Assembly (NCBI GenBank): GCA_002269645.1
Contig: NIVC01000460.1
Coordinates: forward strand, 496,001 to 560,000
Origin: Macrostomum lignano
Lineage: Eukaryota
Direction: 5' to 3'
Length of the DNA stretch: 64,000 bases
Shown here: in pieces, positions 11,294 through 64,000 of the stretch
Position numbering within the stretch: position 1 is the first letter of the stretch
Layout: each line of letters starts with the position of its first letter
Translations under genes and position numbers: made by a program
The notes under the pieces: model-generated
What the model saw: the letters and a program-made list of their open reading frames with translations, nothing else
Told to the model about the DNA's origin: nothing
The model's database searches: none

Positions 11294-11370
11294 AGAAGCG
11301 CTGGTCTAGTCAACCTTATGCACAAACATATATGCCATGAATTTCTGATCTACCGGGCATCAGGAAGAAA

Positions 11371-14744: not shown

Positions 14745-16655
<1,911 letters not shown>

Positions 16656-18450: not shown

Positions 18451-18655
18451 ATTGACATCCCAGCCATTACACTTAGACAATTTCGTGGACACTAGTCAAT
18501 AAAATTAGAGCATCACAGACACCCCAATGCAGTTTAATTAGATTGGAATTCTCATCCGGACACCTCAGCAAACAGAATTAGAGTCACACGGACAGCAGCC
18601 ATCGAAATATTCCTGGCATTGCAGCGGCTCCGGAGTCCCTAAACCGGACTTCCTG

Positions 18656-19233: not shown

Positions 19234-19332
19234 GTGAGCCGGGAGCAGCCTGCAGGATCCGGGGAAAGAGGCCTCAGTCTGGTAGTCCTTGGCTATGCGA
19301 TCTGGATTGGAAGATTGAGAGCTGAGTATTCT

Positions 19333-20998: not shown

Positions 20999-21037
20999 TG
21001 ATGGGGTGCCTCTGTGACTGGCAGCCCTTCCTGCCCT

Positions 21038-22480
21038 CCCTTATCAGTCTCTCCCTCCCTTATCAGTCTCTCCCTTATCAGTCTCTCCCTTATCAGTCTC
21101 TCCCTTCTCAGTCTCTCCCTTATCAGTCTCTCCCTTATCAGTCTCTCCCTTATCAGTCTCTCCCTTATCAGTCTCTCCCTTATCAGTCTCTCCCTTATCA
21201 GTCTCCCTTATCAGTCTCTCCCTTATCAGTCTCTCCCTTATCAGTCTCTCCCTTATCAGTCTCTCCCTTATCAGTCTCTCCCTTATCAGTCTCTCCCTTA
21301 TCAGTCTCTCTTATCAGTCTCTCCCTTATCAGTCTCTCCCTTATCAGTCTCTCCCTTATCAGTCTCCCTTATCAGTCTCTCCCTTATCAGTCTCTCCCTT
21401 ATCAGTCTCCCTTATCAGTCTCTCCCTTATCAGTCTCTCCCTTATCAGTCTCTCCCTTATCAGTCTCTCCCTTATCAGTCTCTCCCTTATCAGTCTCTCC
21501 CTTATCAGTCTCTCCCTTATCAGTCTCTCCCTTATCAGTCTCTCCCTTATCAGTCTCTCCCTTATCAGTCTCTCCCTTATCAGTCTCTCCCTTATCAGTC
21601 TCTCCCTTATCAGTCTCTCCCTTATCAGTCTCTCCCTTATCAGTCTCTCCCTTATCAGTCTCTCCCTTATCAGTCTCTCCCTTATCAGTCTCCCTTATCA
21701 GTCTCTCCCTTATCAGTCTCTCCCTTATCAGTCTCTCCCTTATCAGTCTCTCCCTTATCAGTCTCTCCCTTATCAGTCTCTCCCTTATCAGTCTCCCTTA
21801 TCAGTCTCTCCCTTATCAGTCTCTCCCTTATCAGTCTCTCCCTTATCAGTCTCTCCCTTATCAGTCTCTCCCTTATCAGTCTCCCTTATCAGTCTCTCCC
21901 TTATCAGTCTCTCCCTTATCAGTCTCTCCCTTATCAGTCTCTCCCTTATCAGTCTCTCCCTTATCAGTCTCTCCCTTATCAGTCTCCCTTATCAGTCTCT
22001 CCCTTATCAGTCTCTCCCTTATCAGTCTCTCCCTTATCAGTCTCCCTTATCAGTCTCTCCCTTATCAGTCTCTCCCTTATCAGTCTCTCCCTTATCAGTC
22101 TCTCCCTTATCAGTCTCTCCCTTATCAGTCTCTCCCTTATCAGTCTCTCCCTTATCAGTCTCTCCCTTATCAGTCTCTCCCTTATCAGTCTCTCCCTTAT
22201 CAGTCTCTCCCTTATCAGTCTCTCCCTTATCAGTCTCTCCCTTATCAGTCTCTCCCTTATCAGTCTCTCCCTTATCAGTCTCTCCCTTATCAGTCTCTCC
22301 CTTATCAGTCTCTCCCTTATCAGTCTCCCTTATCAGTCTCTCCCTTATCAGTCTCTCCCTTATCAGTCTCTCCCTTATCAGTCTCTCCCTTATCAGTCTC
22401 TCCCTTATCAGTCTCTCCCTTATCAGTCTCTCCCTTATCAGTCTCCCTTATCAGTCTCTCCCTTATCAGTCTCTCCCTTC
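21038..22480. repeat. 15-bp minisatellite (TTATCAGTCTCTCCC) with 13-bp variants
   Basis: About 95 units starting about 40 nt after the ARH3 stop. Confidence 0.98.
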
Positions 22481-42721: not shown

Positions 42722-43535
42722 CCGAACCCTGTGACCTCTGCTGTCATGACCTTTGTTTGACATCTGGACCCTGTGACGTTTCATGACCTTGGTTTGAACC
42801 TGAACCCTGTGGCCTCTACTTTCACGACCTTGGTTTGAATCTAAACCCTGTGACCTCTGCTTTCATGACCTTGGTTTGAATCTGAACCCTGTGACCTCTC
42901 ATGACCTTGGTTTGAATCTGAACCCAATGACCTCTACTTTCACGACCTTGGTTTGAACCTGATCCCCGTGACCTCTCATGACCTTGGTTTGAACCTGAAC
43001 CCTGTGACCTCTGCTTTCATGACCCTGGTTTGAACCTGATACCTGTGACCTCTCATGACCTTGGTTTGAACCTGAACCCTGTGACCTCTGCTTTCATGAC
43101 CTTGGTTTGAATCTGAACCCTGTGACCTCTCATGACCTTGGTTTGAATCTGAACCCTGTGACCTCTCATGACCTTGGTTTGAACCTGAACCCTGTGATCT
43201 CTACTTTCGTGACCTTCGTTTGTACTCGTACCTGAACCCTGTGACCTCTACTTTCATGACCTTCGTTTGAATCTGAACCCTGTGACCTCTCATGACCTTG
43301 GTTTGAATCTGAACCTGTGACCTCTCATGACCTTGGTTTGAACCTGAACCCTGTGATCTCTACTTTCGTGACCTTCGTTTGTACTCGTACCTGAACCCTG
43401 TGACCTCTACTTTCATGACCTTCGTTTGAATCTGAACCCTGTGACCTCTCATGACCTTCGTTTGAATCTGAACCCTGTGACCTCTCATGACCTTGGTTTG
43501 AATCTGAACCCTGTGACCTCTGCTTTCATGACCTC
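42722..43535. repeat. 35-41-bp intronic minisatellite (TGAACCCTGTGACCTCT[GCTTT]CATGACCTTGGTT...)
   Basis: About 20 units running up to the 3' splice site. Confidence 0.95.
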
Positions 43536-43537
43536 AG

Positions 43538-43900
43538 CAAGAAGAGCGCGCAGCGGACGGCGGCTCTTACACTTCTTCATCAAAGCGAGGCGGCGGCGGT
43601 GCAGGCCGTCGGGCCAGCGACTTCAGCGTCGACAGCTGCAGTCTGGGCAGCGACCAGCAGCCCGGCAACGCCGCCGATCGTCTGAACGCCCTGACGGAGC
43701 TGCGGGAGCAGCTGGCCGCCATGGAGGCTCAGTACGAGCGGGCGCTGTGCGGCAACGCGGAGCTGGCCAGCGAGAAGCAGGTGCTGTCTTACGAAGCCGC
43801 CCTGCTGGCTGACAAGCTGGAAGACGCCGAGGAGGCCAACAGGGAACTGCAGAGAGCGTTTGCCGACAAAAGAAAGGAGAGCGCCTATTTGAAAAATCAG
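43538..43900 (+). CDS. LRRFIP2: LRRFIP exon 3 (start of the coiled coil)
   Basis: LREQLAAMEAQYERALCGNAELASEKQVLSYEAALLADKLED matches the recalled LRRFIP core [27 protein letters not shown].LKD. Confidence 0.9.
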
Positions 43901-44041
43901 GTGGGTGCGCGTGTATTGTTTGTTGTTGTGGTTGTCTTGGCAACTTGAAATTGTCCATCCCATGCTTGCGTTGCGATGAATTCCTCAACCTCTAAATTCA
44001 ACTACTAGTCCCGATGTGGCTTTCTGCTTCGGGGGAGTCAG

Positions 44042-45411
<1,370 letters not shown>

Positions 45412-45509
45412 CTAAGTGGCAATATGCCTGTCTGAGCCACTCTGCCCTTTAACCCTAGCTATCAGGCCTGTATTTAAAGCGAGTCGCGTGCCCTCCCCCT
45501 GCCCGCCAG

Positions 45510-45806
45510 GTATCCGAGCTCACCCACCAGTGCGAGTACGTGAGGCGGCAGCTGGAGCAGCGAGATCAGCTGATCGCCCAGTCCGACTGCGTGCTGCTGG
45601 GCGAATTTGACTCCATCGCCCCCAACGTCGAATCCAAATCGTCTGTTCACCATGGCAACGGAGACGCCGGCGCCGGACTCCTGTTGCCAAGGCAACTGGC
45701 CGAGCGGGTACAGGCGCTGCCGGGATCCAGCCTGGAGGGGAAACTGCGCGGCGCTCTGGACGAACTGGCCGCAGTGCAGGCCAAGAAGGAACTGCTGGAG
45801 AAGGAG
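45510..45806 (+). CDS. LRRFIP2: LRRFIP exon 4
   Basis: Pyrimidine-rich acceptor CCCGCCAG|. Translation VSELTHQCEYVRRQLEQRDQLIAQSDCVLLG...SLEGKLRGALDE. Donor GAG|GTGCGT. Confidence 0.85.
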
Positions 45807-45860
45807 GTGCGTTTGTTATTCGATTGTTTGCCGTGATTAGTGTTGGTAACAGCTATAATG

Positions 45861-46200
45861 AGTGTCAGTAGCGGCCATAGACAAAAGAGTCGGTAGCGGC
45901 CATAGAGAAAGTGTCAGTAGCGGCCATAGACAAAAGAGTCGGTAGCGGCCATAGACAAAAGTGTCAGTAGCGGCCATAGACAAAAGTGTCAGTAGCGGCC
46001 ATAGACAAAAGTGTCAGTAGCGGCCATAGACAAAAGTGTCAGTAGCGGCCATAGACAAAAGTGTCAGTAGCGGCCATAGACAAAAGTGTCAGTAGCGGCC
46101 ATAGACAAAAGTGTCAGTAGCGGCCATAGACAAAAGTGTCAGTAGCGGCCATAGACAAAGTGTCAGTAGCGGCCATAGACAAAAGTGTCAGTAGCGGCCA
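45861..46200. repeat. 25-bp intronic minisatellite (GTGTCAGTAGCGGCCATAGACAAAA)
   Basis: About 13 units. Confidence 0.96.
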
Positions 46201-46278
46201 ATTATCGAACCAAAGAGTCCTGAGAGGCTCCGCATCATCCACTCTAAGAGCCACCCCCTCCGTCCCGCCGCCCTGCAG

Positions 46279-46431
46279 GTGCAGCAGCTCCAAGACGATC
46301 TGGAGCGGGCCAATCGAGGCCGAGTGGACACCGATCAATTGGAGAAGCAGCGGGAGGCGGCCAGGCAGCTCAGCGATCACAAATACAAGCTGGCCACTGC
46401 GCAGCAGCAGATCACAGCTCTGCAGGCCGAT
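46279..46431 (+). CDS. LRRFIP2: LRRFIP exon 5
   Basis: QREAARQLSDHKYKLATAQQQITALQAD matches LRRFIP QREANRQISDLKFKL.KAEQ.IT.LE. Confidence 0.9.
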
Positions 46432-46599
46432 GTGAGCACATTTAGCAGGGCCTCACGTCTGACTTTCATTTATTTTCACTGTTGCTAAGTTTTACTGGCG
46501 TTATTAAATGTTGTTTTAAACATGTTTAGCTACCAACGTAGAATATTTGCTCTCACTACATCGATATAGATGGCGAAATCATATTAATCATATTAGATG

Positions 46600-47260
46600 G
46601 AGATTAGAACAAGATAAAGGTGCGATCAAAGTAGATAAAGGTGAGATTAGATTAGATAAGAGGTTAGATTAGGTTTGATGAGAGATGAGATATCGCGGTA
46701 GATAAAGATGAGATCAAGGTAGATAGATAGAAGTGAGATCAATGTAAATACAGGTGAGATCAAGGTAGATAGAGATCAGATCAAGGTAGATAGAGGTGAG
46801 ATCAAGGTAGATAGAGGTGAGATCAAGGTAGATAGAGGTGAGATCAAGGTAGATAGATAGGAGTGAAATCAATTTAGATACATAGAGGTGAGATCAAGGT
46901 AGATAGAGATGAGATCAAGGTAGATAGATAGAGGTGAGATCAAGGCAGATAGATAGAGGTGAGATCAAGGTAGATAGATAGAGGTGAGATCAAGGCAGAT
47001 AGAGGTGAGATCAAAGTAGATAGATAGAGATGAGATCAAGGAGGTAGATGGATAGAGATGAGATCAAGGTAGATAGATAGAGGTGAGATCAAGGGAGATA
47101 GATGAGATCAAGGTAGATAGATAGAGGTGAGATCGAGGTAGATAGATGAGATCAAGGAAGATAGATAGAGATGAGATCAAGGAAGATAGATAGAGGTGAG
47201 ATCAAGGTAGATAGATGTGAGATCAAGGCAGATAGAGGTGAAATCCAAGGCTAGAGTGAG
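46600..47260. repeat. Degenerate 21-25-bp intronic minisatellite (GAGATCAAGGTAGATAGAGGT)
   Basis: Read directly from the sequence. Confidence 0.9.
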
Positions 47261-47970
47261 ATCCACAAATTAGATCAAGAATGGAGACAGACTGAATCGA
47301 AGTAGTTAGATTAGATTAATTAAATGAGTGATTAGATTCATTTAGAGGTTAAAATCCAACTCTATATGTTCAACAATTAAATGTTGGGTCTGAAGAATTT
47401 GTCTAATTCATTTTGCTCTGTAAAGCTGACAGCCTAAATTAGCTTATCTCACTTTGCAGGCGACACTGCAGAAAGACAAGGTTTGAATAAAATGGAATAT
47501 TGTCCAAGTCTGTCCAGTTTTGTAAAGTGTTAGCCATCGGCAAGGCCTCCTTGATTGCCCAGGCATTCCGCTCTCTTCTCGTCTTGTCTCTACCCGCAAT
47601 GTCTGGGGTCTTGCTGTTTTCTCTGCTTTTAGCAAAAGAAGCAATGCCGTGTGCAGCGATGGGAGGGGGGTTGGTTTGGCCATCTGCGATGCATTTTGGC
47701 CAGATTTGTGAACCGATGAACTTTTTCGTGTATGCACGCGTTTCGCCTACTTGTCAGTGCTAGTAGTATTATGCGGGCAATGCTAGCAATATGCAGTTAG
47801 TAGTAGTTGGAATGCGAGTTGGTCTGTCATTTTTATCCTGCTAGATTGCTGATTTTTAACCAGAGATTGATGATCGCTTGCTTGTGTTTGTACGTTTCCT
47901 GGCGGGTCTGAATTTATCTCAGAAGTCCTCAAGGAACTCCCCATGGAATGCCAAGTCCTAAGTAATTTAA

Positions 47971-48363
47971 GGGTATAACAAGTCCTAATAGAATTCCCAG
48001 GGTATAACAAGTCCTAATAGAATTCCCAGGGTATAACAAGTCCTAATAGAATTCCCAGGGTATAACAAGTCCTAATAGAATTCCCAGGGTATTCTAAGTC
48101 CTAAGAGTATACCAAGTTCTAATGAAATTCCATAGGGTATTCCTCAGGGCATACCAAGTTCTAATGGAATTCCCCAAGGGTAATCCAATTCCTAAGGGAA
48201 TTCCCCAGGGCATACCAAGTCCTAATGGAATTCCCCAAGGGTATTCCAATTCCTAAGGGAATTCCCCAGGGCATACCAAGTCCTAATGGAATTCCCCAAG
48301 GGTATTCCAATTCCTAAGGGAATTCCCCATGGCATACCAAGTCCTAATGGAATTCCCCAGGGT
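47971..48363. repeat. 29-bp array changing into a 61-bp dimer of alternating 31- and 30-bp units
   Basis: GGGCATACCAAGTCCTAATGGAATTCCCCAA alternates with GGGTATTCCAATTCCTAAGGGAATTCCCCA. Confidence 0.9.
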
Positions 48364-48456
48364 ATTTTTCCCAAGCGATTCCTCTGGCGCTTGCTTCTGA
48401 GCTGCTGGTTACCTTAGCCAACCTAGCCAAGCCAGTCTATTGCTAAACCGCTTCAG

Positions 48457-48684
48457 GTGATCCGGCTGGAAGGTCAGGTGAAGCGGCTCACGAAGAAGGC
48501 AGAGGAGGCTGACGAAGAGTGCGGCCAGGCCAAGGCGGAGGCGCGCAACCAGAAGCGGCTGGCCAGGGAGCTCGCCAGCGAGGTGGAGGATTTGAAATCT
48601 CAGAACAACAGCCTGCGCCGGAATCTGGAGCGACTGCGGGCGCCGGGCGGCGGCAAAAGTTCTGGCGGCGGCGACGCCTCTTAG
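48457..48684 (+). CDS. LRRFIP2: LRRFIP exon 6 (last)
   Basis: VIRLEGQVKRLTKKAEEADEECGQAKAEARNQKR...NNSLRRNLERLR matches the LRRFIP C-terminus RLEGQV.RYK..AE.AEK.EDELKAEKRKL...N.HL.KRLEK. Ends in TAG. Confidence 0.9.
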   Translation: MIRLEGQVKRLTKKAEEADEECGQAKAEARNQKRLARELASEVEDLKSQNNSLRRNLERLRAPGGGKSSGGGDAS

Positions 48685-49139
48685 GGTTCGAGTCTGAGCA
48701 CTGCTCATGCTTTGAGAGTCCACTGCCTTAGCCCCAACCCCTGTCTGTTGATCGGCTCACTTCACTTTCACTGATATATATAAAAGTTGTTTTTTAAAAA
48801 CAATGAAAATTGAAGCAATGTAAGCTTTATATTATAATATTCGGTTTCGTATGAAGGCTTACTAAGTCAAGTTAATGAAGGCCTTAGTTTAAGTTGTAAA
48901 AAGTGCCTGTTTATTGCTGCGCTGTGTCTGCGAGAGATCAGATATTAGCCTGACTCTACATGTATGCTATATTTTATTACAGGTTTGATGCGCACTATGC
49001 AGCCTGCCATTTATAGAATATACCCGGGAGTCTGTATTGATGTAGTCCTAGCTCGTATACTCAGCTGAGGTTAGGGCTCAGTTGTTGAACCCCCTATGCA
49101 TGTAGTGATGACCTGCATAGCTGGTTAGATCTTCCCCTA

Positions 49140-49470
49140 TCGCCCTCTTCCCCTCTCGCCGTCTCCCCTCGCCTTCCCCCCTCGCCTTCTCCCCCTCTCG
49201 CCGTCTCCCCTCGCCTTCCCCCCTCGCCCTCTTCCCCTCTCGCTGTCTCCCCTCGCCTTCTCTCTCTCGCCCTATTCCGCTCGCTGTCTCCCTTCTCGCC
49301 CTCCCCCTCTCGCCCTCTTCTCCTCTCGCCGTCTCCCCTCGCCTTCTCCCCCTCTCGCCTTCTCCCCCTCTCGCCGTCTCCCCTCTCGCTTTCTTCCCCT
49401 CTCGCCCTCTTGCCCTCTCGCCCTCTTCCCCTCTCGCCCTCTTCCCTCTAGCCTTCTTCCCCTCTCTTCA
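49140..49470. repeat. Pyrimidine-rich degenerate repeat (TCGCC...CCCTC)
   Basis: Read directly from the sequence. Confidence 0.85.
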
Positions 49471-49837
49471 TATCATTTCCCTCCGAGCCCATTAAAACCA
49501 GCATTCACCTACTATGACTAATTCAGTATAATTGCATATTACTAATTGTCAATTGCTATCTACAGAACTGCTTTCACAACAAATTTGGTCTGCCTGCTAT
49601 TATTTATCAAATTACGTACCAGTGTCACTCTGATCCGATATGTATCTTGCTTTCTACGAGTATTTAATCTGGTGCGGCTGCCGCCCTGCCGTTATGATGC
49701 TAAGCAGATTAAATTAATCTGTCTTCCTCTCACCGAGTTTTGTTCGCATCGATTTATTGCTTTCAGTGGAGTCTGTTGGTAGAAATATTATATGAGTTTT
49801 GTCTGTTAAAATCATAATTTGACTAAATTCTTTGGGA

Positions 49838-51597
49838 TCTGACAATTAGCTCCTATGGGATCTGACAATTAGCTCCTGTGTGATCTGACAATTAGCCCCT
49901 ATGGGATCTGACAATTAGCCCCTATGGGATCTGACAATTAGCCCCTATGGGATCTGACAATTAGCCCCTATGGGATCTGACAATTAGCCCCTATGGAATC
50001 TGACAATTAGCCCCTATGGGATCTGACAATTAGCCCCTATGGGATCTGACAATTAGCCCCTATGGGATCTGACAATTAGCTCCTATGGGATCTAACAATT
50101 AGCTCCTATGGGATCTGACAATTAGCTCCTATGGGATCTAACAATTAGCTCCTATGGGATCTGACAATTAGCTCCTATGGGATCTGACAATTAGCCCCTA
50201 TGGGATCTGACAATTAGCTCCTATGGTATCTGACAATTAGCCCCTATGGGATCTGACAATTAGCTCCTATGGTATCTGACAATTAGCTCCTATGGGATCT
50301 GAAAATTAGCTCCTATGGGATCTGACAATTAGCTCCTATGGGATCTGACAATTAGCCCCTATGGGATCTGACAATTAGCTCCTATGGGATCTAACAATTA
50401 GCTCCTATGGGATCTGACAATTAGCTCCTATGGGATCTAACAATTAGCTCCTATGGGATCTGACAATTAGCTCCTATGGGATCTGACAATTAGCCCCTAT
50501 GGGATCTGACAATTAGCTCCTATGGGATCTAACAATTAGCCCCTATGGGATCTGACAATTAGCCCCTATGGGATCTGACAATTAGCCCCTATGGGATCTG
50601 ACAATTAGCTCCTATGGGATCTGACAATTAGCTCCTATGGGATCTGACAATTAGCCCCTATGGGATCTGACAATTAGCTCCTATGGGATCTGACAATTAG
50701 CCCCTATGGGATCTGACAATCAGCCCCTATGGGATCTGACAATTAGCTCCTATGGGATCTGACAATTAGCTCCTATGGGATCTGACAATTAGCCCCTATG
50801 GGATCTGACAATTAGCCCCTATGGGATCTGACAATTAGCTCCTATGGTATCTGACAATTAGCTCCTATGGGATCTGAAAATTAGCCCCTATGGGATCTGA
50901 CAATTAGCCCCTATGGGATCTGACAATTAGCCCCTATGGGATCTGACAATTAGCTCCTATGGGATATGAAAATTAGCTCCTATGGGATCTGACAATTAGC
51001 TCCTATGGGATCTGACAATTAGCTCCTATGGGATCTGACAATTAGCCCCTATGGGATCTAACAATTAGCCCCTATGGGATCTGACAATTAGCTCCTATGG
51101 TATCTAACAATTAGCTCCTATGGGATCTGACAATTAGCTCCTATGGGATCTGACAATTAGCCCCTATGGGATCTGACAATTAGCCCCTATGGGATCTGAC
51201 AATTAGCCCCTATGGGATCTGACAATTAGCTCCTATGGGATCTGAAAATTAGCTCCTATGGGATCTGACAATTAGCTCCTATGGGATCTGACAATTAGCT
51301 CCAATGGGATCTGACAATTAGCTCCTATGGTATCTAACAATTAGCTCCTATGGGATCTGACAATTAGCTCCTATGGGATCTGACAATTAGCTCCTATGGG
51401 ATCTGACAATTAGCTCCTATGGGATCTGACAATTAGCCCCTATGGGATCTGACAATTAGCTCCTATGGTATCTGACAATTAGCTCCTATGGGATCTGACA
51501 ATTAGCTCCTATGTGATCTGACAATTAGCCCCTATGGGATCTGACAATTAGCCCCTATGGGATCTGACAATTAGCCCCTATGGGATCTGACAATTAG
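49838..51597. repeat. 23-bp minisatellite (TGACAATTAGCYCCTATGGGATC)
   Basis: About 76 units. Confidence 0.98.
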
Positions 51598-52342
51598 TTT
51601 CGGTGCTTCATTTTTATTATAAAGTACATTGAACCGTGCTCACTGTTCGCCAGCCTTCAGCATAGAGTGACCACGCGATTGGGTTCACTTTGTCTGTACA
51701 TCAAATAATTGCTACAGCTTTTTAACAAAATTCAATCAAGTTCACTCGCACTTAGCTTTGAAAATTGGAGTTAGTTGTGTACTTAGTATGCTAAATATAA
51801 TTTCGTGATATATCTAGGCTGATGCACCAGTTCAGACTTCATAGCCTGTAAAGTTTAACGAAATTTATGATTGATTCATTTGTGTCACTTGCCCTGTCAC
51901 GATTGCAACAACCCCTGTTGTCCCTGTCCGCGTACGTGTGTTTAAATATATTATTCTATCTATATGAATATTGTTTTTGATTAACGATTAAAACTGCAAT
52001 TTTAAATTCAGCAGCACGTGCTGTGTGTTTGTAGCTGAGCTAATTATGGCTAATTATAATTGCAATTTCTTTATCTATTATGCCCAGTGGTGAGGTCTCA
52101 TCACAATGGCATACATGTAACAGTGTCTGCACCGGTTCGCTCGTACTTACCAGTTAACTGTCTCACCTATGCTAGTCAAAAAGCATTGAGAATTGGCACA
52201 TGGCGTCTGTGGCTTCAAAGTCTGGGAGTCTACGAATGGTTTTGAGTTTCGCGAATATCCCGCAGCTGTACCCTAACCTGTTTCTGAACCTATTTTCCCT
52301 GCCTGCTACCCTTTCTACCTACTTCTCTCCCTACCTATACTC

Positions 52343-54593
52343 TTCGATGCAGAACTGGAGACTGCAGGACGTCAAGTCCAACTTCAAGGCCAACCAAGTG
52401 CGTCTTAAAAGTTTGCACTAGTTGTTAAATAGCAGTATTTATTATTTAATTTCATTTTTATTCCTTTGTCATTATAAAAATTTCCCTACCGCTGCTCTAC
52501 GATAAATCTTCCCTCTCAATCATGCACAGCGTCACAGGTGGGCTAGCCGTGTCAACGCGAACTCGATATGTTCCAGACACTGCTCGGACAGAGGAGCAGT
52601 ACAGCATCAATATCCATGTCCAGGACACATCCTCTTCGGAATTCCAAGCAGCAGTGCAGTGTAGGCTGAAGCACACAAGTCAGGGTTCTCTGCTCTTGTT
52701 GCGTCATGGAGTGGGTTCAACGACCAAGTTCGTCGCTACGTAAAGGCCAACACCTGAATTTTCAGACCTCTTTACCTCATGGAGCGGATTCCAGGACGAA
52801 GTCCGCCGGTACGTAGAGCAGTACACATCGAGATTCTGTGGCATATTCACCTCATGGAGCGGCTTCGATGCTCAAGTGCGGCAGTATGTACTAAGCCATG
52901 AAGGAGAATTCGCTACACTTCTTGGAGTGAGCTCTAAAGCTCCAGACACTTCATCGTCGGAATTCCGTGCTTTAGTTCTTAAATACATCGAAGAAAACAA
53001 AACAGCGAGACTTCACTTAATATCTTTGCAAGTTGGAACACTTGGCGATCACACGCGTCTCTATTTGAAGGCCCATACCTCCGAGTTTTTCGACATTTAC
53101 CTCGTGGAGTGGCTTTGAATCACAAGTTCGAATATATATCCAAACGTATAAAGAGCAATTCAGCGACTTAAAACTCTCCAAAACAGAGGAGATTGACACA
53201 TCTCCAGAATTCCGCGCCTTGGTGCTGAGGTACTCCCAAGAGCACAAGCCAGAGTTCTCAGCCATGTTCATCACATGGAGCGAGTTTGGCGACCAAGTGC
53301 ACCGCTACGTGAAAGAGCACACGTCGGAGTTCTCCAACATCTTTGTCTCGTAGAGCGGATTCCGCAGCCAAGTGCGTAGCTACGTGCAGGAGAACACTTC
53401 GGAGTTCTCTGACATCTATCTCAACTGGGAGGGTTTCGAGCCGCAAGTGCGTGAATATGTGCAGAAACAGGAAAGCAAGTTTGTCGAGCTTCTCCCCGTC
53501 AAGACTAAAGAGATTGACACTTCGTCGCCAGAGTTCCGCGCCATGGTGCTGAGATACGTTGAGGAGCACGAATCGGAGTTTGCCTCTATCTTCGCCACGT
53601 GGAACATTTTCAGCGACTACTTGCAGCGCTACGTTAAAGAGAACACGTGGGAGTTCACAGAAATCTTCTCCTGGAGCGGAGTCGAAAGTCAGATTAGAAA
53701 TTATTTGCGTAAGAACTCAGAGAAATTCTCCGCCCAGCTCACTGTGCAGGCGAAGGAGATCGACACGTCGTCGCCAGAAGTCCAAGCAAACAAGTCAGAA
53801 TTTACTGCCATGTTCGTTACCTGGAACGAGTTCGAGGATCAAGTGCGCCGCTACGTCGAAGAGCACACACATCGGAGTTCTCTAGCATCTTTGTGTCGTG
53901 GAGTGGATTCGAAACTCAAGTTCGGCAGTATATTCGAACACACGAATACAAGTTTAGTGAGCTGAAACAGCCTGATTCCTCGTCACCGGAGTTTCGCTCA
54001 ATGGTTTTAAAGTACGTTCGAGAACACTTTTCAGAGTTTCTATGACCTTTACATCTTGAAGCCTTTGAAGCTGAAATTCGGCGTTATGTTTTTCAGCACG
54101 ATACAGAGTTTAGTTTATTGCGTTGCTTGGCTGCATTCGTGAAAAGGATAAACAGACTTTGCAACTGATTTCCTCCAGTGGCTGTTGTAATGAGATTTCA
54201 TGGACAATTTCTGAATCTGGTTTTCACTATGAACGAAACGATGAATCTTTATCTGTGATCCATTCAGGCAAATCAGCCGTTGGAATGACGGCCTTTGAGC
54301 CACCAAATGCAGCTGACGAAAGACTTGAAAGGAATTTGTCTGACTTAAGCACAGGATTCTCGTTCGTTCATAGACCTACGCTCGTACAACATCTGGCGAC
54401 ATCAAAACAACTGAATCAAGAGAGTACATGTCGTTCGGATCTCGAACAGAGTCGGTTCCCGTCGGTTTTCAGGGCATTGTATCGGGAGCTACTGGGTCAC
54501 GCGCCGGTTACATCGGACGGAGAGATGCTAGACTTATCCGGATCGAGAACTCAACAGTTTTATAACTCATCTATTAGTATAGCATTTGAATAG
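52343..54593 (+). pseudogene. Partial diverged duplicate of the 3' half of the downstream plakin gene
   Basis: Homology to 60766 onward starts abruptly mid-exon. A 30-bp deletion at 52489/52490 removes the splice acceptor. TGG>TAG at 53351-53353, plus several frameshifts. Confidence 0.8.
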
Positions 54594-55763
54594 GATATGA
54601 AGCTCAAAAAAAAGTAAAATATTTTAGCATAACTTACAGAAACCAACTACCAAAAAAGCAGTTTAATTGAAGTGCATACTTTGCTGTTGGGATTTTTTCA
54701 GCGACTATTTATCCACAGTTTTTTTTATTTTCGCACTGTTTAGAAAATCGATTTTAACCCTGGTTATTAAGTTTTTACGCTCTTAAGTTTTACTTTGAAC
54801 CAAATCTTTATATATAGTGTGTAGTTGTCTTTAGTTTTAACAAATTTAACTAACGTAGAATTATAATTAAAACTTATCACTACTAGCTCTTATTTATTGT
54901 TTTTTTAAAGATTTTTCTGAATAACAAAGTTACCCATAATTACACATTTTGCTGAGTAGAAAGAATTTCAATTAGCTGCGAATTCTTTTACGTAACAATA
55001 AATTAACCATTTCTCTTTCGCCAAAAAACTTTTTTACATATTTTTTAAATTAAATATATACCAACTAAAGTGCGAAATATTTAACACTCATTAAAACACG
55101 ATAACTAGTACCCAATTTCTTGTTAATCTTTATTTATTACGTCAACGGAAGCGATGTTCTGTAAGGCGTAAGAGGCACACTGAACAAGTGCGCCATAAGC
55201 TTAATTCTCTTGATACTCGGGTGTCCACGGAGAAACCTAGTTGTTTTCCAATTACGAGCGTAAATGAAAAAAAGAGAATTAGAAGAAAACGAAGGTATGG
55301 AAAATAAGATTGGAGCAGAGGGGGTGTAAAGATGAATTCAACTCAGCGAGCAGAGCTTTGCAAAGCAGTTGCGATTCATATGGAGCTCAAGCGGCCAAGC
55401 CAAGGAGTGATGGCGAAAGGCTGCGGCTAAAGATGGAATTCTTGCAAACTTTGGAAAACTGTCCACCTTGCTTCCTTTTATGAGGCAAAAAGTGCCTTAT
55501 TATTCAAAGCCAGCCGTAAAAGGCGTAAACGTTTTTACCCCGCGAGAGGGGTCAGAGTGAGCCTGCCAGGGGGGGGGGCAAGAAGAGATGCAGACAGCCC
55601 TGAGTCCGTGGGTCGTTCGGTGCGCTTCAAGTAAGTTGGGCGGCAGACTGTCTGGCCTGCTTTAGAAATGCAGTTCTTCCCACTGTGCCACTCTGCTCTG
55701 GTGTGTTGTTTTACGTCTGCGCCTCCATTCTGCTCTGTCTGTGCTTCTCCGCCATCTATCAAT

Positions 55764-55792
55764 CTATCTATCTAGCTATCTATCTATCTATA

Positions 55793-55823
<31 letters not shown>

Positions 55824-55888
55824 TTATCATCTATCATCTATCTATCTATCTATCTATTTATCATCTATCATCTATCTATCTATTTATC

Positions 55889-55942
<54 letters not shown>

Positions 55943-55973
55943 TTATCATCTATCATCTATCTATCTATTTATC

Positions 55974-56023
<50 letters not shown>

Positions 56024-56066
56024 TTATCATCTATCTATCTATCTATCTATCTATTTATCATCTATC

Positions 56067-56112
<46 letters not shown>

Positions 56113-56117
56113 TTATC

Positions 56118-56179
<62 letters not shown>

Positions 56180-56375
56180 TTATCATCTATCTATCTATCT
56201 ATCTATCTATCTATTTATCATCTATCATCTATCTATCTATCTATTTATCATCTATCTATCTATCTATCTATCTATTTATCATCTATCTATCTATCTATCT
56301 ATCTATTTATCATCTATCATCTATCTATCTATCTATTTATCATCTATCATCTATCTATCTATCTATCTATCTATC
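55764..56375. repeat. (TCTA)n / GATA-type microsatellite with TTTATCA variants
   Basis: Read directly from the sequence. Confidence 0.98.
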
Positions 56376-56937
56376 CCCTATTATCTGTCCACATTAATTA
56401 TTTATTTCTTTCTATTCTCTCGTGCAGAGCCATCTTTCCATTTCTATCTCACTTGGTTTTGTTGCATTTTTTTCACTCAATGCTGGCTTGAAAAGCTGTA
56501 AGAGTTTTTGCTGCATCTACTCGCTGTTCAAGCGTCGTCAATAGGCTTACTTTGGACTCGGGAGGAGCAGTTGAGAAGCTCCACCGCCACTGGACAGTTG
56601 CTGAATGAATGCTAAAGGAACAATAGCCAGGCAAAAAAGAGATTCGGTGGGTCTTTCAATGCCTTTCAATGTTGGGGTTATTAAAGCGGGCAGCCATCTC
56701 CAGTATGCGCCTTCTCTGCGGCCCACAGAACCCAGCACTGTTTTTCTCGAAAGACAGCCCCAGTTCTGACTAAAAATTAGCAAAGCTTTTCAGCGCATCA
56801 AACCTGCAATTGCTTAACTCTCCTTGTATTTCAGAAATCTTAACTACCCTTTTTCCGAACGGAAGAATCGAGATTTAGTGAGTGATTTATTTTTTTTCGA
56901 ATCGCTGGAAATTCGATATAGTACTGTATGTTGCTAT

Positions 56938-57170
56938 ATGGGACTGGAGTGGGATTCTGTAGGGACTGAAGTGGGATTCTGTAGGGACTGAAGTGGGATT
57001 CTGTAGGGACTGGAGTGGGATTCTGTAGGGACTGAAGTGGGATTCTGTAGGGACTGAAGTGGGATTCTGTAGGGACTGGAGTGGGATTCTGTAGGGACGA
57101 GTGGGATTCTGTAGGGACTGGAGTGAGATTCTGTAGGGACGAGTGGGATTCTGTAGGGACTGGAGTGAGA
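56938..57170. repeat. 20-22-bp minisatellite (GTGGGATTCTGTAGGGACTGRA)
   Basis: About 10 units. Confidence 0.93.
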
Positions 57171-57272
57171 CAATTAAACATCTTTATCATTTGCTTTTGC
57201 ATGGACCTTGTTGGCATTTTTCGGTTATGGTGAAAAAATTTTTCGTGAACTTCACCAAATACTCGCTGACAG

Positions 57273-57665
57273 GTGACCCTTGATCGCCTCTCAATGACGG
57301 CTGTGGCGACGGCGCATCAGCAGGAGATTGATCAGTGGCTGCATGACAACCGAAATGACGTGGAGTCAGCTGCCATCGGCTGCACTCACCAGGCGCTGCT
57401 GTTTCAGCAAACCAAGCAGTCGGTCCTGCTGGAGGAGATCCAAGCGCTTGAGAGCAGGCTGGACGAGTCCAACAAGTCAGCGGCAGCGTCCCTCACCAAG
57501 CTGAAGGCAATGGAGAGTCAGATTGGCGTGAACCAGGAGGCGCTGACTTACCTCCAGCAGGTGACGTCGCTTGAGACGGCAGTTATGTCAGCCGGTCAGC
57601 AAGTGATGGAGAAGGCACTGCAGATGTCCAAAGTGACCGATGGAGTCGTCCTGAAAGCCAAGAAG
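57273..57665 (+). CDS. Plakin-family protein, first exon found; model join(57273..57665,58149..58373,58458..58604,58993..59147,59311..59419,60017..60165,60327..60516,60721..60820,60928..>64000) with two 1-nt frameshifts
   Basis: CTGACAG| acceptor and AAG|GTGAGA donor. Helical, spectrin-like translation. In-frame ATG at 57294. Upstream exons not identified. Confidence 0.75.
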
Positions 57666-58148
57666 GTGAGAAAAGAACTCAACCTTATTGAAAATCTGTG
57701 CGAATACAGTTGACCAAAAAAATCTACATACGAGCCTCGTATGTCAATTACTAAGCTGCAAGGGAGTAAGCTAATAAGATTGGGGTGAATTTATGAGTAT
57801 GCCATGTGTATGAAGGTCCGGTGTTACGATGGGCGGCAACCTTGCATGTGATCTGGGTGTATGAGTTTATCAAACTCAGGCGTCGACAAAATCTACATCC
57901 AGAGACAGATGAGAGAGGAAATTGAGAAGAGAGAACAGTTGAGAGAGTAGAGAGGAGAGAGAAGATTAGATGAGAGGTAGGATCAGAAAGTCTAGAAAAC
58001 AATTTAATGTCCTATTTCAATCCAAAATCTTGACGGCTCTCTAGGAGCTACTGGTAGAACAAGACAGCTGATGAAGCAAGAAACGGGTAAAGCCATATTA
58101 TACGCTACTCGTAGTTAGAAAATCGAATTGGCGAATATTTTCTCCCAG

Positions 58149-58373
58149 GAGTTGTCGGCCGAGGTCCACGGCACCTGGAGCTGGGTGAGCCAGCTGGCCG
58201 ACCTGAACCGGCTCCACACCCGCAACGCCGCGGACTACCAGACCTTCCACCACAGCGCCTACGAGCTCAACGCCATGCTGAACAGCCGAGCCAGCAGCAG
58301 CAGCTCCGCCATTGCCGCCATTCCCGCCAACAAGATGCTGGGCTCCATCAAGCGCATAAACACCGTGCTCACT
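58149..58373 (+). CDS. Plakin exon (spectrin-repeat region)
   Basis: WSWVSQLADLNRLHTRNAADYQTFHHSAYEL resembles the plakin motif W.W...L......HL..A..Y.QFF.EA. Phase 0/0. Confidence 0.85.
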
Positions 58374-58457
58374 GTGAGTAACCTCTTGTCAGTTTCAATA
58401 TCGGAAATACTCAAATCGCACACTTCAAAAGTAAAAGCCTCCTCGAAACCTCGGCAG

Positions 58458-58604
58458 GACAACTTGGCCCAGTTCAACCGGCTGTGGCAGCTGTCAGTCG
58501 ACCTGACGCAGCGCAGCCGAGCTGTGGTGCCGCTGCACCTGCGTTTCAGCACTGACGCCATCCCGTTCGCGGGCAAGAACGTGTTCAAGTTCGATGACGG
58601 CGAG
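58458..58604 (+). CDS. Plakin exon (lead-in to SH3)
   Basis: L.QRSRAVVPLHLR resembles plakin L..RS..IV.L..R. Donor GAG|GTAAGT. Confidence 0.85.
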
Positions 58605-58992
58605 GTAAGTGCCAACTGTATTGCAGAGTGAATTGCATATTTGATGGCGCTCGTCCTATCATATTCGGACACCTGCGAGTGGAAGTTGTGCCTGAAAACC
58701 TCTGCACACTACTGACTGAGTAGTGCGGAGAGAAAATGAAATGAAAATAAAAAACGGCAAAGCAATTAGCATACCAACAATAAAAATGATGGGTGTCTAC
58801 ACGTACTCCTAGAATGCGGGACTGGTCCTGGGCTATCGCAAGGTTGTTTTACTTCTTCCTAGCCTTCCGTTACTTTTTCTCCTAATTGGAAACCAAGCCC
58901 TTTTGAGTGGCGCATTTGCCAGTATTTCAAATATTTTCACAAAAAAATTCTGCTGTCTTCCGTACGATCGTATGGCCTCTCAATCCCCACAG

Positions 58993-59147
58993 ACGGTCCT
59001 GGAGCCGGGAGAGCAGGTGACTGTCATCGACAACTCCCAGTCCTACACGTGGACGGTGAGGCGCTCGGACGGAAGCGAGGTCGAAGTGCCCAGCACCTGC
59101 ATCTGGCTGCCGCCGGCCGATCCGCAGGCAGTGCAGCTCGCTATCGG
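58993..59147 (+). CDS. Plakin exon (SH3 insertion)
   Basis: GEQVTVIDNSQSYTWTVRRSDGSEVEVPSTCIWLPPADPQAV is the plakin SH3 signature (G....L.DNS....W.V....G....VPS.C...PP.D.EA). Confidence 0.92.
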
Positions 59148-59310
59148 GTTTGTGGGAATATTATTATAAAAATACTTCTTTATTGCTCACTCCTTGTCTT
59201 GAGCGCATGAAGTCTTAAAAGTGCTTTGATAATTAAAAAAAGATTAGGCATTTAGAAAAGCAGTCGTTTTGTATTTAAGAACTGAAAAGCGAACTCGTTG
59301 CGGTTTTTAG

Positions 59311-59419
59311 GCTGAGAAGAAAGCTGCTGAACACCTGGTCTCAGGTTCTGAACAGTCTGCGACAGTGGATCGCCGAGTTCTTTGATTCCTACTTGACCCA
59401 GATGCTCAAGAGCCCTGTG
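59311..59419 (+). CDS. Plakin exon
   Basis: TTTTAG|G completes a phase-2 codon. LRRKLLNTWSQVLNSLRQWIAEFF. Donor GTG|GTGAGT. Confidence 0.8.
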
Positions 59420-60016
59420 GTGAGTGCTTTTTGATCATTCGAGTGAAAAATTTCTGATCATAATAACCATACCGTTTATCATTGAAATCGTATAGTATTC
59501 TTTTTTTACACCTAAAAACAAAAGCCAGCTTTAGCGTGTAGTTAATATATAGGACAGCAGTTTGCGTCGTTTGCAAAGTGCTTTCGGAGCGGAGATACTG
59601 AACGATCTCTGTTCGCTTTTTCTTTTATTGCAATCGAAACTCGCGACGAAATCGACTGCTTTGGGTGCGGTGGGCACTCTTCAGTTCTCAAAAAGCCAGG
59701 CGCAACAGTCAAGCTGTATCGGTGCACGCCTTAAAACAAAATTGTGCTATTCCTTGAACATTTAATCGTGCAGACAGATTCTTTATTGCATTTTGGTATT
59801 TCTTTTTATATAACACCAAATATGAAAAGTGATACATAGAATGGCTTTATTTCAAGTTGAAACATTAGTTTTTAGCTACTTTTATAATAGCATCCAAGGA
59901 TTCTCCACCTCAGCTTATACATACGCCACTTGCATATAAATATACTTATGTATAGACATGCTTTTTATAGTACTCGTAAAAGTACAATTTTCAAATCTAC
60001 CCATTGCCGTCTACAG

Positions 60017-60165
60017 GGGGTAGCCAAAAAAAATCAAGGACGCTGTGACTGAATTTCTTAATTCGCTGCGTCAGTCGAGCCAAACATTCCTGGGCGTTGA
60101 CGATCAGTTTACGGATCGCATTGTCAAATCCATCGATAAAGTGCTTGAAAAGATGACAATCTGCG
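60017..60165 (+). CDS. Plakin exon; needs a one-base shorter A run at 60026-60033
   Basis: CTACAG| acceptor and TGCG|GTGAGA donor. The frame is restored if A8 is read as A7. Confidence 0.6.
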
Positions 60166-60326
60166 GTGAGAATCTGATTCAAAAATACCTTATTAATACC
60201 AGAATACTTTTCTGTAAACCAACTAATTCGATGCAAGTTTTAGTGAAGAAATGTAACCGTAAATGCAGAAGTAAAGTACTTTGATGCTTATTAATGTCCA
60301 ATGAACGAATTTTTTGTTTACTTTAG

Positions 60327-60516
60327 AAGGTCCAACGGCATCCCTAGTGGACAGAGAACTAATAATTCTACAGGCCTGCCTAGCCAAGCTACAGGAGCAC
60401 CTGAACGAATGGCGTCATTGCTCAAATGAAGCTACAGAAGCTGAGACCGAGCTGCAAGGCCGGACCGCTTTATCGAAGGAGTCTTCTGAAGTTCTGGTGC
60501 GCATCGAACTGCTTTC
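60327..60516 (+). CDS. Plakin exon
   Basis: TTTAG|AA (phase 1) and TTTC|GTAAGT (phase 2); helical translation. Confidence 0.8.
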
Positions 60517-60720
60517 GTAAGTCGGACGGACCATTTTGATTTGCTGGAATTTATCTTGTTAGGCGTGGCGTGCGTTCTGACACCTCCCACCTCTGAAGGC
60601 CACTTGTGGTCGGCGTGAGGTGCAAATTTTTGTTGTTCTTGTTAGACTTTTGTAATCACACGTGATTAAAATACATGTAGTCTAAAGGGACTGCACTTTA
60701 ATTTCTCTTTTCACAAGCAG

Positions 60721-60820
60721 ACAGCTGCAAGAAGAGTCCCAGTCTAAGTTTGAGGAGCTACAGCGTTCGATGCAGAACTGGAGACTGCAGGACGTCAAGT
60801 CCAACTTCACGGCCAACCAA
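60721..60820 (+). CDS. Plakin exon
   Basis: AAGCAG|A (phase 2) and CAA|GTGCGT (phase 0). QLQEESQSKFEELQRSMQNWRLQDVKSNFTANQ. Confidence 0.8.
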
Positions 60821-60927
60821 GTGCGTCATAAAAGTTTGCACTAGTTGTTAAATGGCAGCATTTATTATTTAATTTCTCTTTTTAATTAGTCATTATAAAA
60901 ATTTCCCTACTCCTGTAAACATCGCAG

Positions 60928-63900
60928 AGAGCACCGCAACCGCTGTTCTACGATATATCTTCGCTCTCAATCATGCACAGCGTCACAGGAAGACCTGCCG
61001 TGTCAACGCGAACTCTTAATGTTCCAGACACATCTGAGACAGACGAGCAATACAATAAAAGATCAGAAGAAAAAGTTACTGCTGAACTAACGGTGAAAAA
61101 ATACAATATTGACACTTCGTCTTCGGAATTCCGTGCACTGGTACAGAAGTACGTCGAAGAGAACAAGTCGGATTTCGCAGCGATCTTTCGCACCTGGAGT
61201 GAGTTCAAGGAGCAAGTGCGTCTGTACGTCGAGGAGCACACGTCAGAGTTCTTGAACGTTTTCACCAAGTGGAGTGGCTTCGATGATTATGTTCGAAAAT
61301 ATGTGCAGCAGAACCAAGAAAAGTTCATCACAGTGCCTGCCGTCAAGACTAAGGAGATAGACACTTCATCTTCGGAATTCCGTGCACTGGTGCAGAAATA
61401 CGTCGAAAAGAACAAGACCGAGTTTATCGCCTTATTCGTTACCTGGAGTGAGTTCGAAGAACAAGTGCGTCGCTACGTCGAAGAGAACACATCGAAGTTC
61501 TCTAGCATCTTTTTTTCGTGGAGCGGATTCGAAAGAAAAGTCAAGCAGTACGTGGTGAAGAATGAAGAGAAGTTTGCTACGCTTCTTCCCGTCAAGACCA
61601 AAGAGATAGACACTTCGTCTTCGGAATTCCGTGCACTGGTACAGAAGTACGTCGAAGAGAACAAGTCGGATTTCGCAGCGATCTTTAGCACCTGGAGTGA
61701 GTTCAAAGAGCAAGTGCGTCTGTACGTCGAGGAGCACACGTCAGAGTTCTCGAACGTTTTCACCAAGTGGAGTGGCTTCGATGATTACGTTCGAAAATAT
61801 GTGCAGCAGAACAAGAAAAGTTCATCACAGTGCCTGCCGTCAAGACCAAAGAGATAGACACTTCGTCTTCGGAATTCCGTGCACTGGTACAGAAGTACGT
61901 CGAAGAGCACAAGACCGAGTTTACCGCCATGTTTGTTACTTGGAGTGAGTTCGAGGAGCAAGTGCGTCGCTACGTCGAAGAGAACACATCGAAGTTCTCT
62001 AGCATCTTCTTTTCGTGGAGTGGATTCGAAAGCAAAGTCAAGCAATACGTGGTGAAGAATGAAGACAAGTTTGCTACGCTTCTTCCCGTCAAGACCAAAG
62101 AGATAGACACTTCGTCTTCGGAATTCCTTGCACTGGTACAGAAGTACGTCGAAGAGAACAAGTCGGATTTCGCAGCGATCTTTAGCACCTGGAGTGAGTT
62201 CAAAGAGCAAGTGCGTCTGTACGTCGAGGAGCACACGTCAGAGTTCTCGAACGTTTTCACCAAGTGGAGTGGCTTCGATGATTACGTTCGAAAATATGTG
62301 CAGCAGAACGAAGAAAAGTTCATCACTGTGCCTGCCGTCAAGACTAAGGAAATAGACACTTCGTCTTCGGAATTCCGTGCACTGGTGCAGAAGTACGTCG
62401 AAGAGAACAAGTCGGATTTCGCAGCGATCTTTAGCACCTGGAGTGAGTTCAAAGAGCAAGTGCGTCTGTACGTCGAGGAGCACACGTCAGAGTTCTCGAA
62501 CGTTTTCACCAAGTGGAGTGGCTTCGATGATTACGTTCGAAAATATGTGCAGCAGAACCAAGAAAAGTTCATCACAGTGCCTGCCGTCAAGACCAAAGAG
62601 ATAGACACTTCGTCTTCGGAATTCCGTGCACTGGTACAGAAGTACGTCGAAGAGCACAAGACCGAGTTTACCGCCATGTTCGTTACTTGGAGTGAGTTCG
62701 AAGAACAAGTGCGACGCTACGTCGAAGAGAACACATCGAAGTTCTCTAGCATATTTTTTTCGTGGAGTGGATTCGATGAAAAAGTGCGTTGGTATGTCGA
62801 AAGCCATGTGTCTAAGTTTAGTGATATCTTCGTTAATTGGACCGGTTTTGAAGCAAAAGTTCAACAGTACGTGATGCAAAATGAAGAAAAGTTTAAAATA
62901 TTGTTTGATGTTAAAAGCACTGAGCCTGATCTTTCATCACCAGAATATCGGGAATTGGTTTTAAAGTACATTCAAGAAAACATGTCCGAGCTTTTTATCA
63001 TTTTTACAACCTGGAGTGGTTTTACGGCTCAAATCCGTCGCTATGTTCAGCAGCACGAAGACGATTTTATTAAGCTGCTAGGCTGCGTTCGCGAATCAAA
63101 AAGTTCAATCCACACAGGCGAATCGCTTAAAATATCGGATACAGTGAAGACGACCGAAAGCAGCGAGTACAAGTCGTTCGGATCTCGAACGGAGACGGCT
63201 CCTGTCGGTGTTCAGGGCATTGTATCGGAAGCTACTGGGTCACGCGCCGTTAACATCGGCGGATCGGACGGAGAGATGCTAGACTTATCCGGATCGAGAA
63301 CTAGCCGATATTCCGCCTTCCCAGGAGAGTCGTATGGAACGTCGGATACAGTGAAGACGACCGAAAGCAGCGAGTACAAGTCGTTCGGATCTCGAACGGA
63401 GACGGCTCCTGTCGGTGTTCAGGGCATTGTATCGGAAGCTACTGGGTCACGCGCCGTTAACATCGGCGGATCGGACGGAGAGATGCTAGACTTATCCGGA
63501 TCGAGAACTAGCCGATATTCAGCCTTCCCAGGAGAGTCGTATGGAACGTCGGATACAGTGAAGACGACCGAAAGCAGCGAGTACAAGTCGTTCGGATCTC
63601 GAACGGAGACGGCTCCTGTCGGTGTTCAGGGCATTGTATCGGGAGCTACTGGATCACGCGCCGTTAACATCGGCGGATCGGACGGAGAGATGCTAGACTT
63701 ATCCGGATCGAGAACTAGCCGATATTCAGCCTTCCCAGGAGAGTCATATGAAACGTCGGATACAGTGAAGACGACCGAAAGCTACGAGTACAAGTCGTTC
63801 GGATCTCGAACGGAGACGGCTCCTGTCGGTGTTCAGGGCATTGTATCGGAAGCTACTGGGTCACGCGCCGTTAACATCGGCGGATCGGACGGAGAGATGC

Positions 63901-64000
63901 TAGACTTATCCGGATCGAGAACTAGCCGATATTCAGCCTTCCCAGGAGAGTCGTATGGAATATCGGATACAGTGAAGACGACCGAAAGCAGCGAGTACAA
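60928..64000 (+). CDS. Giant terminal exon of the plakin gene encoding two tandem-repeat regions; open to the window end after a 1-nt deletion at about 61812
   Basis: ATCGCAG|AGA acceptor is in phase 0 with ORF 60973. Manual translation from 61815 through the repeats shows no stop before 64000. Confidence 0.8.
61108..63080 (+). repeat. Coding 249-bp (83-aa) higher-order repeat made of 25-aa subunits, order A-B-A-B-A-A-B plus a degenerate unit
   Basis: IDT codons start at 61108, 61357, 61606, 61854, 62103, 62352 and 62601. Confidence 0.95.
63135..64000 (+). repeat. Coding 207-bp (69-aa) Ser/Gly/Thr-rich tandem repeat, four full units plus a partial fifth
   Basis: SDTVKTT units start at 63135, 63342, 63549, 63756 and 63963. 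Confidence 0.95.

Follow-up and report, generated by a model that had tools for sequence, protein, structure and literature searches.

In canonical plakins, the plakin domain lies at the N-terminus, a rod comes next, and a repeat domain makes up the C-terminal part (PMC3352950). BPAG1e and C. elegans VAB-10A have no actin-binding domain and carry their repeat region at the end (PMC3352950), Drosophila Short stop (shot) places a giant repeat exon of 10,497 nucleotides (nt) after the plakin domain (PMC2173965), and GSR-rich regions are known at plakin C-termini (PMC5979291). In this study, we analyzed a stretch of 64,000 nt from the genome of Macrostomum lignano (GenBank assembly GCA_002269645.1, contig NIVC01000460.1:496001-560000; hereafter called the window), in which a tandem protein repeat is encoded directly downstream of a truncated plakin domain. 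All coordinates of the repeat are given on the + strand. We consider it moderately probable that this repeat is a lineage-specific helical domain, tandemly amplified, which stands at the position of the rod or plakin repeats of canonical plakins in a Macrostomum-specific plakin-domain gene.

The M. lignano gene resembles Short stop in that a single, very large exon of tandem protein repeats comes after a plakin domain with an embedded SH3 domain, BPAG1e and VAB-10A in the lack of an actin-binding domain and the terminal repeat region, and plakins in the GSR motifs of its tail. Unlike in plakins, its plakin domain is short (~480 amino acids, aa) and strongly diverged, and in place of plakin repeats it has unrelated units of 83 and 69 aa. 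The combination of a beta-hairpin and two helices of ~38 aa is absent from these units, and no match to the plakin repeat profile of Pfam (PF00681) was found at E<=1 over 61108-63998.

The repeat array and its plakin-domain gene

Translation of 61111-63107 (+) gives 24 subunits of ~25 aa with the consensus S(E/G)FxxxVRxYVxx(N/H)xxxFxxxFxxW, in which Y10 does not vary and F3 and F18 each occur in at least 90% of the subunits. The subunits make up seven 83-aa units, which belong to two types and follow one another as A B A B A A B. Each unit is built as 25+25+33 aa, with the 33-aa subunit terminating in the linker VKTKEI/DTSS; the units are separated by Pro/Ser/Thr/Lys linkers of 12 aa. Over 61111-62779, Tandem Repeats Finder reported periods of 249 base pairs (bp) (6.7 copies, 79% matches, score 2052) and 498 bp (3.3 copies, 90% matches, score 2522). 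The end of the array is diverged (4+2 subunits): the seventh unit (B3) is followed by two additional diverged subunits, and a final two-subunit block finishes at 63107. The original prediction for this stretch had the coordinates, the consensus, and the A/B signatures correct, and its ABABAAB order and 25+25+33 build were found again by translation. Its anatomy of the repeat is accurate; what it overlooked are a frameshift at 61812, a decayed copy at 52.3-54.6 kb, and the fact that the repeat occurs in a single species.

Seven exons upstream of the repeat (57294-60820) encode the ~480 aa of the truncated plakin domain (Table 1). The open stretch in the frame of exon 1 begins at 57270, so that a stop lies just upstream of the first Met, and since the probable start codon lies at 57294, the protein would have no actin-binding domain. 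A plakin-type SH3 domain was detected at 58903-59169 (Pfam SH3_10, PF17902, E 3.7e-10), and residues 126-321 matched the plakin-domain structures of desmoplakin (3r6n) and plectin (3pe0) at E ~3e-8. Judged from its sequence, the gene has the arrangement by which a plakin domain is recognized, i.e., spectrin-like repeats with an SH3 domain embedded in the fifth repeat. This domain directly upstream of the repeat also lends support to the earlier guess that the gene encodes a cytolinker. Direct reading of the sequence revealed that a phase-0 GT-AG intron of 107 nt (60821-60927, with the GT donor at 60821) leads into the repeat exon, and the database protein P0001 shows the corresponding junction between ...ANQ and RAPQPLF at the start of this exon.

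The repeat exon was followed past the window on contig locus L001, of which the first 16,707 bases are 100% identical to window positions 47294-64000. It is the terminal exon and extends over ~7.3 kb from 60928 to a stop at the window-equivalent position 68186 (L001 20893), and the repeat region takes up its first third. A 69-aa repeat follows in ~24 copies on the contig, with 97-98% identity, and runs to the exon stop; its enrichment in GSR motifs was equalled by only 14 of 200,000 shuffles. The Pfam scan, which covered the part of the exon inside the window, detected neither a rod (coiled-coil or spectrin) nor a GAR domain; the 4.2 kb of the exon beyond the window were read as sequence.

Comparison of the units indicates that the array is protein-coding. 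Differences between A and B units are distributed over codon positions 1, 2, and 3 as 81, 44, and 133, and the Nei-Gojobori ratio of nonsynonymous to synonymous divergence (dN/dS) lies between 0.10 and 0.25 for each of the 20 unit pairs that allowed its computation, with a synonymous divergence (dS) of 0.8-1.8 between the two types. Because third-position differences dominate and dN/dS is this low, the repeat must have evolved under protein-level constraint on the + strand; the unit differences thus show purifying selection on a protein-coding repeat, which bears out the earlier claim of a protein repeat. The open reading frames of 75-150 aa on the opposite strand are by-products of the repetition.

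The repeat was compared with two protein collections. A word-indexed search of 5.8 billion proteins returned a single cluster, consisting of M. lignano A0A1I8GR27 and its relatives, and the same kind of search with the plakin domain as the query found M. lignano paralogues only. An exhaustive HMMER search with the unit profile over 1.84 billion representative proteins resulted in five matches, i.e., three M. lignano plakin-domain paralogues (P0001, P0006, and P0007), one translated satellite, and one bacterial LRV-repeat protein. Such a profile search had been proposed together with the original prediction, and it found no named relative. These searches indicate that the 83-aa repeat is confined to one small M. 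lignano plakin-domain protein family.

Within this family, the paralogues P0007 and P0010 contain exactly one 83-aa unit (102 bits) flanked by unrelated sequence, which suggests that the domain is naturally 83 aa long and that its amplification gave rise to the array. On the contig, the single unit of the paralogue lies at window-equivalent positions 81444-81674, and this tandem paralogue also carries 53-aa Cys-containing repeats. Units A2 and A4 differ by 1 nt and B2 and B3 by 7 of 174 nt; the edges of the array are diverged and its middle is homogenised, as would be expected if blocks of 249 bp and 498 bp (A+B) had undergone unequal crossing-over.

Predicted structure and comparison with named families

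The hydrophobicity of the repeat has one sharp peak at 100 degrees, the sharpness of which is partly due to the fact that 25 residues correspond to almost exactly seven helical turns. AlphaFold2 was applied to one unit (12-row alignment) and to 334 aa (11-row alignment), giving predicted local distance difference test (pLDDT) values of 60 and 53 and predicted template modelling (pTM) scores of 0.37 and 0.33, respectively. In both models, DSSP assigns to each subunit a predicted helix of 13 residues, a one-residue break at the conserved N/H, and a helix of 8-10 residues that ends in Trp, with predicted breaks of 4-5 residues at the W-S-(E/G)-F junctions and coil in the VPAVKTKEIDTSS linkers. 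The short amphipathic helices proposed earlier are therefore seen in the hydrophobicity peak as well as in every modelled subunit, and since the predicted helices are only 8-13 residues long, a long coiled coil is not expected, as had been claimed. The further proposal that these helices pack into a folded bead or solenoid finds no support at the pLDDT and pTM values obtained; in its tertiary arrangement, a unit could be a bundle of three kinked helices or a small solenoid made of six short ones.

In a Pfam scan of the whole array, six unrelated families exceeded their cut-offs (VQ, DUF285, DUF3106, Mrr_cat, PfUIS3, and Mu Gam). None of them reaches the cut-off on a single unit (for example, VQ 14.6 vs 20.5, DUF285 20.6 vs 25, and PfUIS3 20 vs 25), and the single unit of the paralogue has no Pfam match; these hits are therefore regarded as artefacts of summed weak matches to near-identical copies. 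For the VQ motif (PF05678, FxxhVQxhTG), the 44-45 bits of the array are obtained only by summing, the value of 14.6 is that of a single B unit, and A3 and the paralogue unit are not listed at all. The resemblance comes from the stretch FRALVQKYVE, in which VE stands instead of TG in the six units having it and Q is changed to L in the diverged units. DUF285 (PF03382), a beta-solenoid family of the LRR clan, likewise owes its 32.7 bits to summing, and the 100-degree periodicity of the repeat comes without a beta signal.

Other candidates were also rejected. A unit resembles the spectrin repeat in its possible topology, i.e., three amphipathic helices per unit arranged as a rod, and the N-terminal half of the protein itself consists of spectrin-like repeats. 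It differs from the spectrin repeat in length (83 vs ~106 aa) and in having Pro-containing linkers in place of a continuous inter-repeat helix; an hhalign comparison with the plakin-domain alignment of the same protein family gave a probability of 1.1%, and there was no Pfam Spectrin match. Derivation of the subunit from the plakin-domain helix LLNTWSQVLNSLRQWIAEFFDSY (59312-59419) was considered on the basis of a weak likeness (TWS....LRQW..E), for which the hhalign probability is only 1%. Profiles of HEAT, ARM, TPR, and ankyrin repeats in Pfam gave no match at E<=1 with the array or at E<=10 with single units, and the best E-values in sequence searches of the PDB were 0.76 with one sequence and 0.2 (GpsB) with the unit profile. 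That the original prediction recognised no named repeat class in it therefore agrees with the results for Pfam families at cut-off on a single unit, for PDB sequences, and for the Foldseek comparison of the AlphaFold models, a check it had itself proposed and which yielded no match to a described repeat structure.

Frame breaks, gene models, and neighbouring features

One base is missing after 61812, so that the first frame stops at 61857 and the repeat goes on in the -1 frame. Unit A2 reads CAGAAC-AAGAAAAG (CAGAAC-AAG) at window positions 61803-61820; at the same site, A1 and A4 read CAGAACCAAGAAAAG / CAGAACCAAG, and A3 reads CAGAACGAAG, likewise in frame. The missing base falls in a two-base CC run. 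In total, the giant exon has four frame changes in this contig, three of them in the GSR-repeat part, and each frame segment is open for 150-770 codons with no in-frame stop. Indels such as the one in the CC run are typical of long-read contigs. P0003, a database protein of 2314 aa from a different M. lignano assembly, has the identical unit order and the FLALVQ variant specific to A3, and is in frame across the 61812 site, where it reads YVQQNQEKFITV. Since P0003 is in frame at this site and the frame segments stay open over such lengths, the frame breaks are probably long-read assembly errors or polymorphism and not decay.

The gene model PAA82667.1 (BOX15_Mlig021572g1, identical to P0010) spans L001 10001-35644, i.e., window-equivalent positions 57294-82937. 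Its exon 1 comes from the present gene (100% identity) and its later exons come from the tandem paralogue ~17 kb downstream, and it therefore appears chimeric. Because this model treats the giant exon as an intron, the repeat is missing from the NCBI protein set; the exon was left out of the GenBank proteins as its frame is interrupted by long-read indels and the model was merged with the paralogue next to it. The UniRef/MetaClust model P0003 is stitched through a decayed partial duplicate of the gene end upstream (Table 1). With its frameshifts and a stop codon, this duplicate looks genuinely decayed.

Table 1. Positions of the repeat units, exons, and related features in the window
Feature	Position	Strand	Evidence and remarks
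Decayed partial duplicate of gene end	52335..54560	+	Copy of exon end ...MQNWRLQDVKSNFKANQ; about ten 83-aa-unit fragments with frameshifts; stop at 53351-53353; one 69-aa repeat copy at 54389-54544
Exon 1, probable start codon (MTAVATAHQQ...), opens truncated plakin domain	57294..57665	+	tblastn of P0003 and P0010, 100% identical; NCBI models P0007 and P0010 begin at the same Met
Six further plakin-domain exons	~58146-58607 (small internal intron), 58990-59166 (SH3), 59312-59419, 60018-60164, 60326-60517, 60722-60820	+	tblastn of P0003
Start of giant terminal exon, lead-in	60928..61110	+	61-aa lead-in closing with decayed linker remnant EKVTAELTVKKYNI; AG acceptor 60926-60927, phase-0 intron; sequence read directly
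Unit A1, 83 aa	61111..61359	+	Unit hidden Markov model (HMM), 140.7 bits
Unit B1, 83 aa	61360..61608	+	Unit HMM
Unit A2, 248 nt only	61609..61856	+	One base (C) missing after 61812, frame shift
Unit B2, 83 aa	61857..62105	+	Unit HMM
Unit A3, 83 aa	62106..62354	+	Unit HMM
Unit A4, 83 aa	62355..62603	+	One nucleotide different from A2
Unit B3, extended to four subunits, last two diverged	62604..62936	+	Translation
Terminal diverged block, two subunits (SPEYRELVLKYIQ...CVRESKSS)	62937..63107	+	Unit HMM
207-bp (69-aa) Ser/Gly/Thr-rich repeat, three GSR motifs per copy	63135..64000, runs off window	+	Tandem Repeats Finder and L001

Besides this gene, several other features were observed in the window. 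The upstream neighbour is a gene of the LRRFIP coiled-coil family, the exons of which at 43532-48681 (+) (PF09738, E 1.9e-13) are broken up by GTCT-type and other satellite arrays. The open stretch 18542-19234 (+) codes for an ADP-ribosylglycohydrolase domain (PF03747, E 6.9e-30), and at 3-422 (+) there is a piece of the C-terminus of a retroelement integrase (PF22938, E 2.2e-12), together with a Tf2-1-like SH3 domain. The window is unusually rich in long satellite and microsatellite arrays (5441-6132, 11369-13207, 14745-16654, 21036-22479, 44042-45406, 49833-51597, and 55754-56375), including TCTG/GTCT runs, a 42-bp repeat in 44 copies, a 15-bp repeat in 97 copies, a 23-bp repeat in 77 copies, and ATCT in 160 copies, and the extreme AT and GC skews of its composition profile result from this density.

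Alternative explanations and significance

In the reading that we favour, the 83-aa, predicted alpha-helical domain consists of three homologous 25-aa amphipathic subunits and is present as a single copy in the tandem paralogue, and in the present gene it would have been amplified to about eight units via unequal crossing-over of 249-bp and 498-bp blocks. Docking at a junction or a membrane site may be the role of the plakin domain and its SH3 domain, the small helical beads in a row may serve as a segmented spacer, a platform for multivalent binding, or both, and the GSR-motif repeats may form a cytoskeleton-facing tail. We infer the folded-bead architecture and the spacer or binding function of this scheme; its repeat anatomy, coding constraint, helical propensity, plakin context, and occurrence in a single species are shown by the data. 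A number of observations weigh against it. Both AlphaFold models are of low confidence, with no confident tertiary fold, and Foldseek against the PDB gave 0 hits in one run and a best E of 0.43, with TM <= 0.14, in another. The units are mildly acidic (14-15 D/E vs 10-12 K/R), a composition that gives no reason to expect direct binding to the acidic surfaces of filaments. GenBank takes the giant exon as an intron, this assembly has the four frame changes across it, and no papers were found on Macrostomum with plakin, plectin, or spectraplakin, nor on the locus tags.

The low confidence of the models could mean that the helices do not fold autonomously. The subunits would then be surface-seeking amphipathic helices, similar to those of apolipoproteins or perilipins, and ordered only on lipid, a membrane, or a filament, an explanation that we consider rather unlikely. 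It would account for helices predicted with low confidence and no stable packing, for the strong 100-degree signal, and for first-helix hydrophobic moments of 0.3-0.6, and the top Foldseek row is ApoB100, although its E of 0.43 is not significant. A compact domain, however, fits better with ~30% hydrophobic positions, including 14 aromatics per 83 aa at fixed positions, and with the conserved N/H and W-S-G breaks, the sharp unit boundaries, and the single-copy unit of the paralogue; moreover, with alignments of 11-12 rows any orphan family is expected to give a low pLDDT. The constraint on the units also bears on whether the exon might be a pseudo-exon in decay or a relic that is not expressed, with real frame breaks and no present function. 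At a dN/dS of 0.1-0.25, and with long frame segments free of in-frame stops where the upstream copy has one, this appears distinctly improbable, even though the 1-base deletion at 61812 is accompanied by three more frame changes downstream in the exon, the GenBank annotation skips the exon, and a clearly decayed copy lies 7 kb upstream. The in-frame reading of the other assembly at 61812 and the position of the missing base in the CC run also speak against such a relic.

A distant relationship to LRV proteins was examined as well. The only match in the 1.84e9 proteins that is neither from Macrostomum nor a satellite is the bacterial LRV protein P0009 (E 9.8e-6 to the unit profile; E 2.8e-59 to LRV, PF01816), which would make the 25-aa subunit a divergent homologue of bacterial-type LRV or HEAT-like alpha-alpha repeats and the units short right-handed solenoids. 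P0009 and the subunit have the common core VRRYVxENTS with the same hydrophobic spacing after it, at periods of 26 and 25 aa, and hhalign gave a probability of 87% (P 4e-6) over 17 columns, but this comparison was made post hoc with a target picked from the whole library. Since all per-domain i-Evalues of P0009 are at least 410, its total is a sum of weak repeat matches, and only one of the many LRV proteins scored. Membership in LRV was therefore rejected, the Pfam profiles LRV, LRV_2, and HEAT giving no match to the window protein at E<=1 or to single units at E<=10, and we consider homology very unlikely. As a structural analogy, LRV is kept as a weak lead: the M. lignano repeat shares with LRV and HEAT-like repeats the ~25-aa period, two short predicted helices per repeat, the V-R-x-x-V-x-x-N core, and the hydrophobic spacing, but its subunits are grouped in linker-separated threes instead of a continuous solenoid, and its second helix is rich in aromatics (F/F/W), whereas that of LRV is Pro-initiated and Leu-rich.

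To return to a tandemly amplified, lineage-specific helical domain, a stronger form of this reading would be that the 83-aa unit is an undescribed autonomously folding domain which arose within Macrostomum and took over the filament- or partner-binding role of the plakin repeats or rod. We regard this form as unlikely; if true, it would represent a new module of cytoskeletal linkers, in which copy number tunes the reach or valency of the protein. Orphan tandem repeats are not rare in fast-evolving flatworm genes. If the exon is expressed, M. lignano would possess a plakin cytolinker whose rod and repeat region have given way to a home-grown domain found in no other sequenced organism, and the gene would illustrate cleanly how a domain is born and tandemly amplified within a conserved scaffold. 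Because both transgenesis and RNA interference are possible in M. lignano, a model for adhesion and regeneration, the function of this protein would be directly testable.

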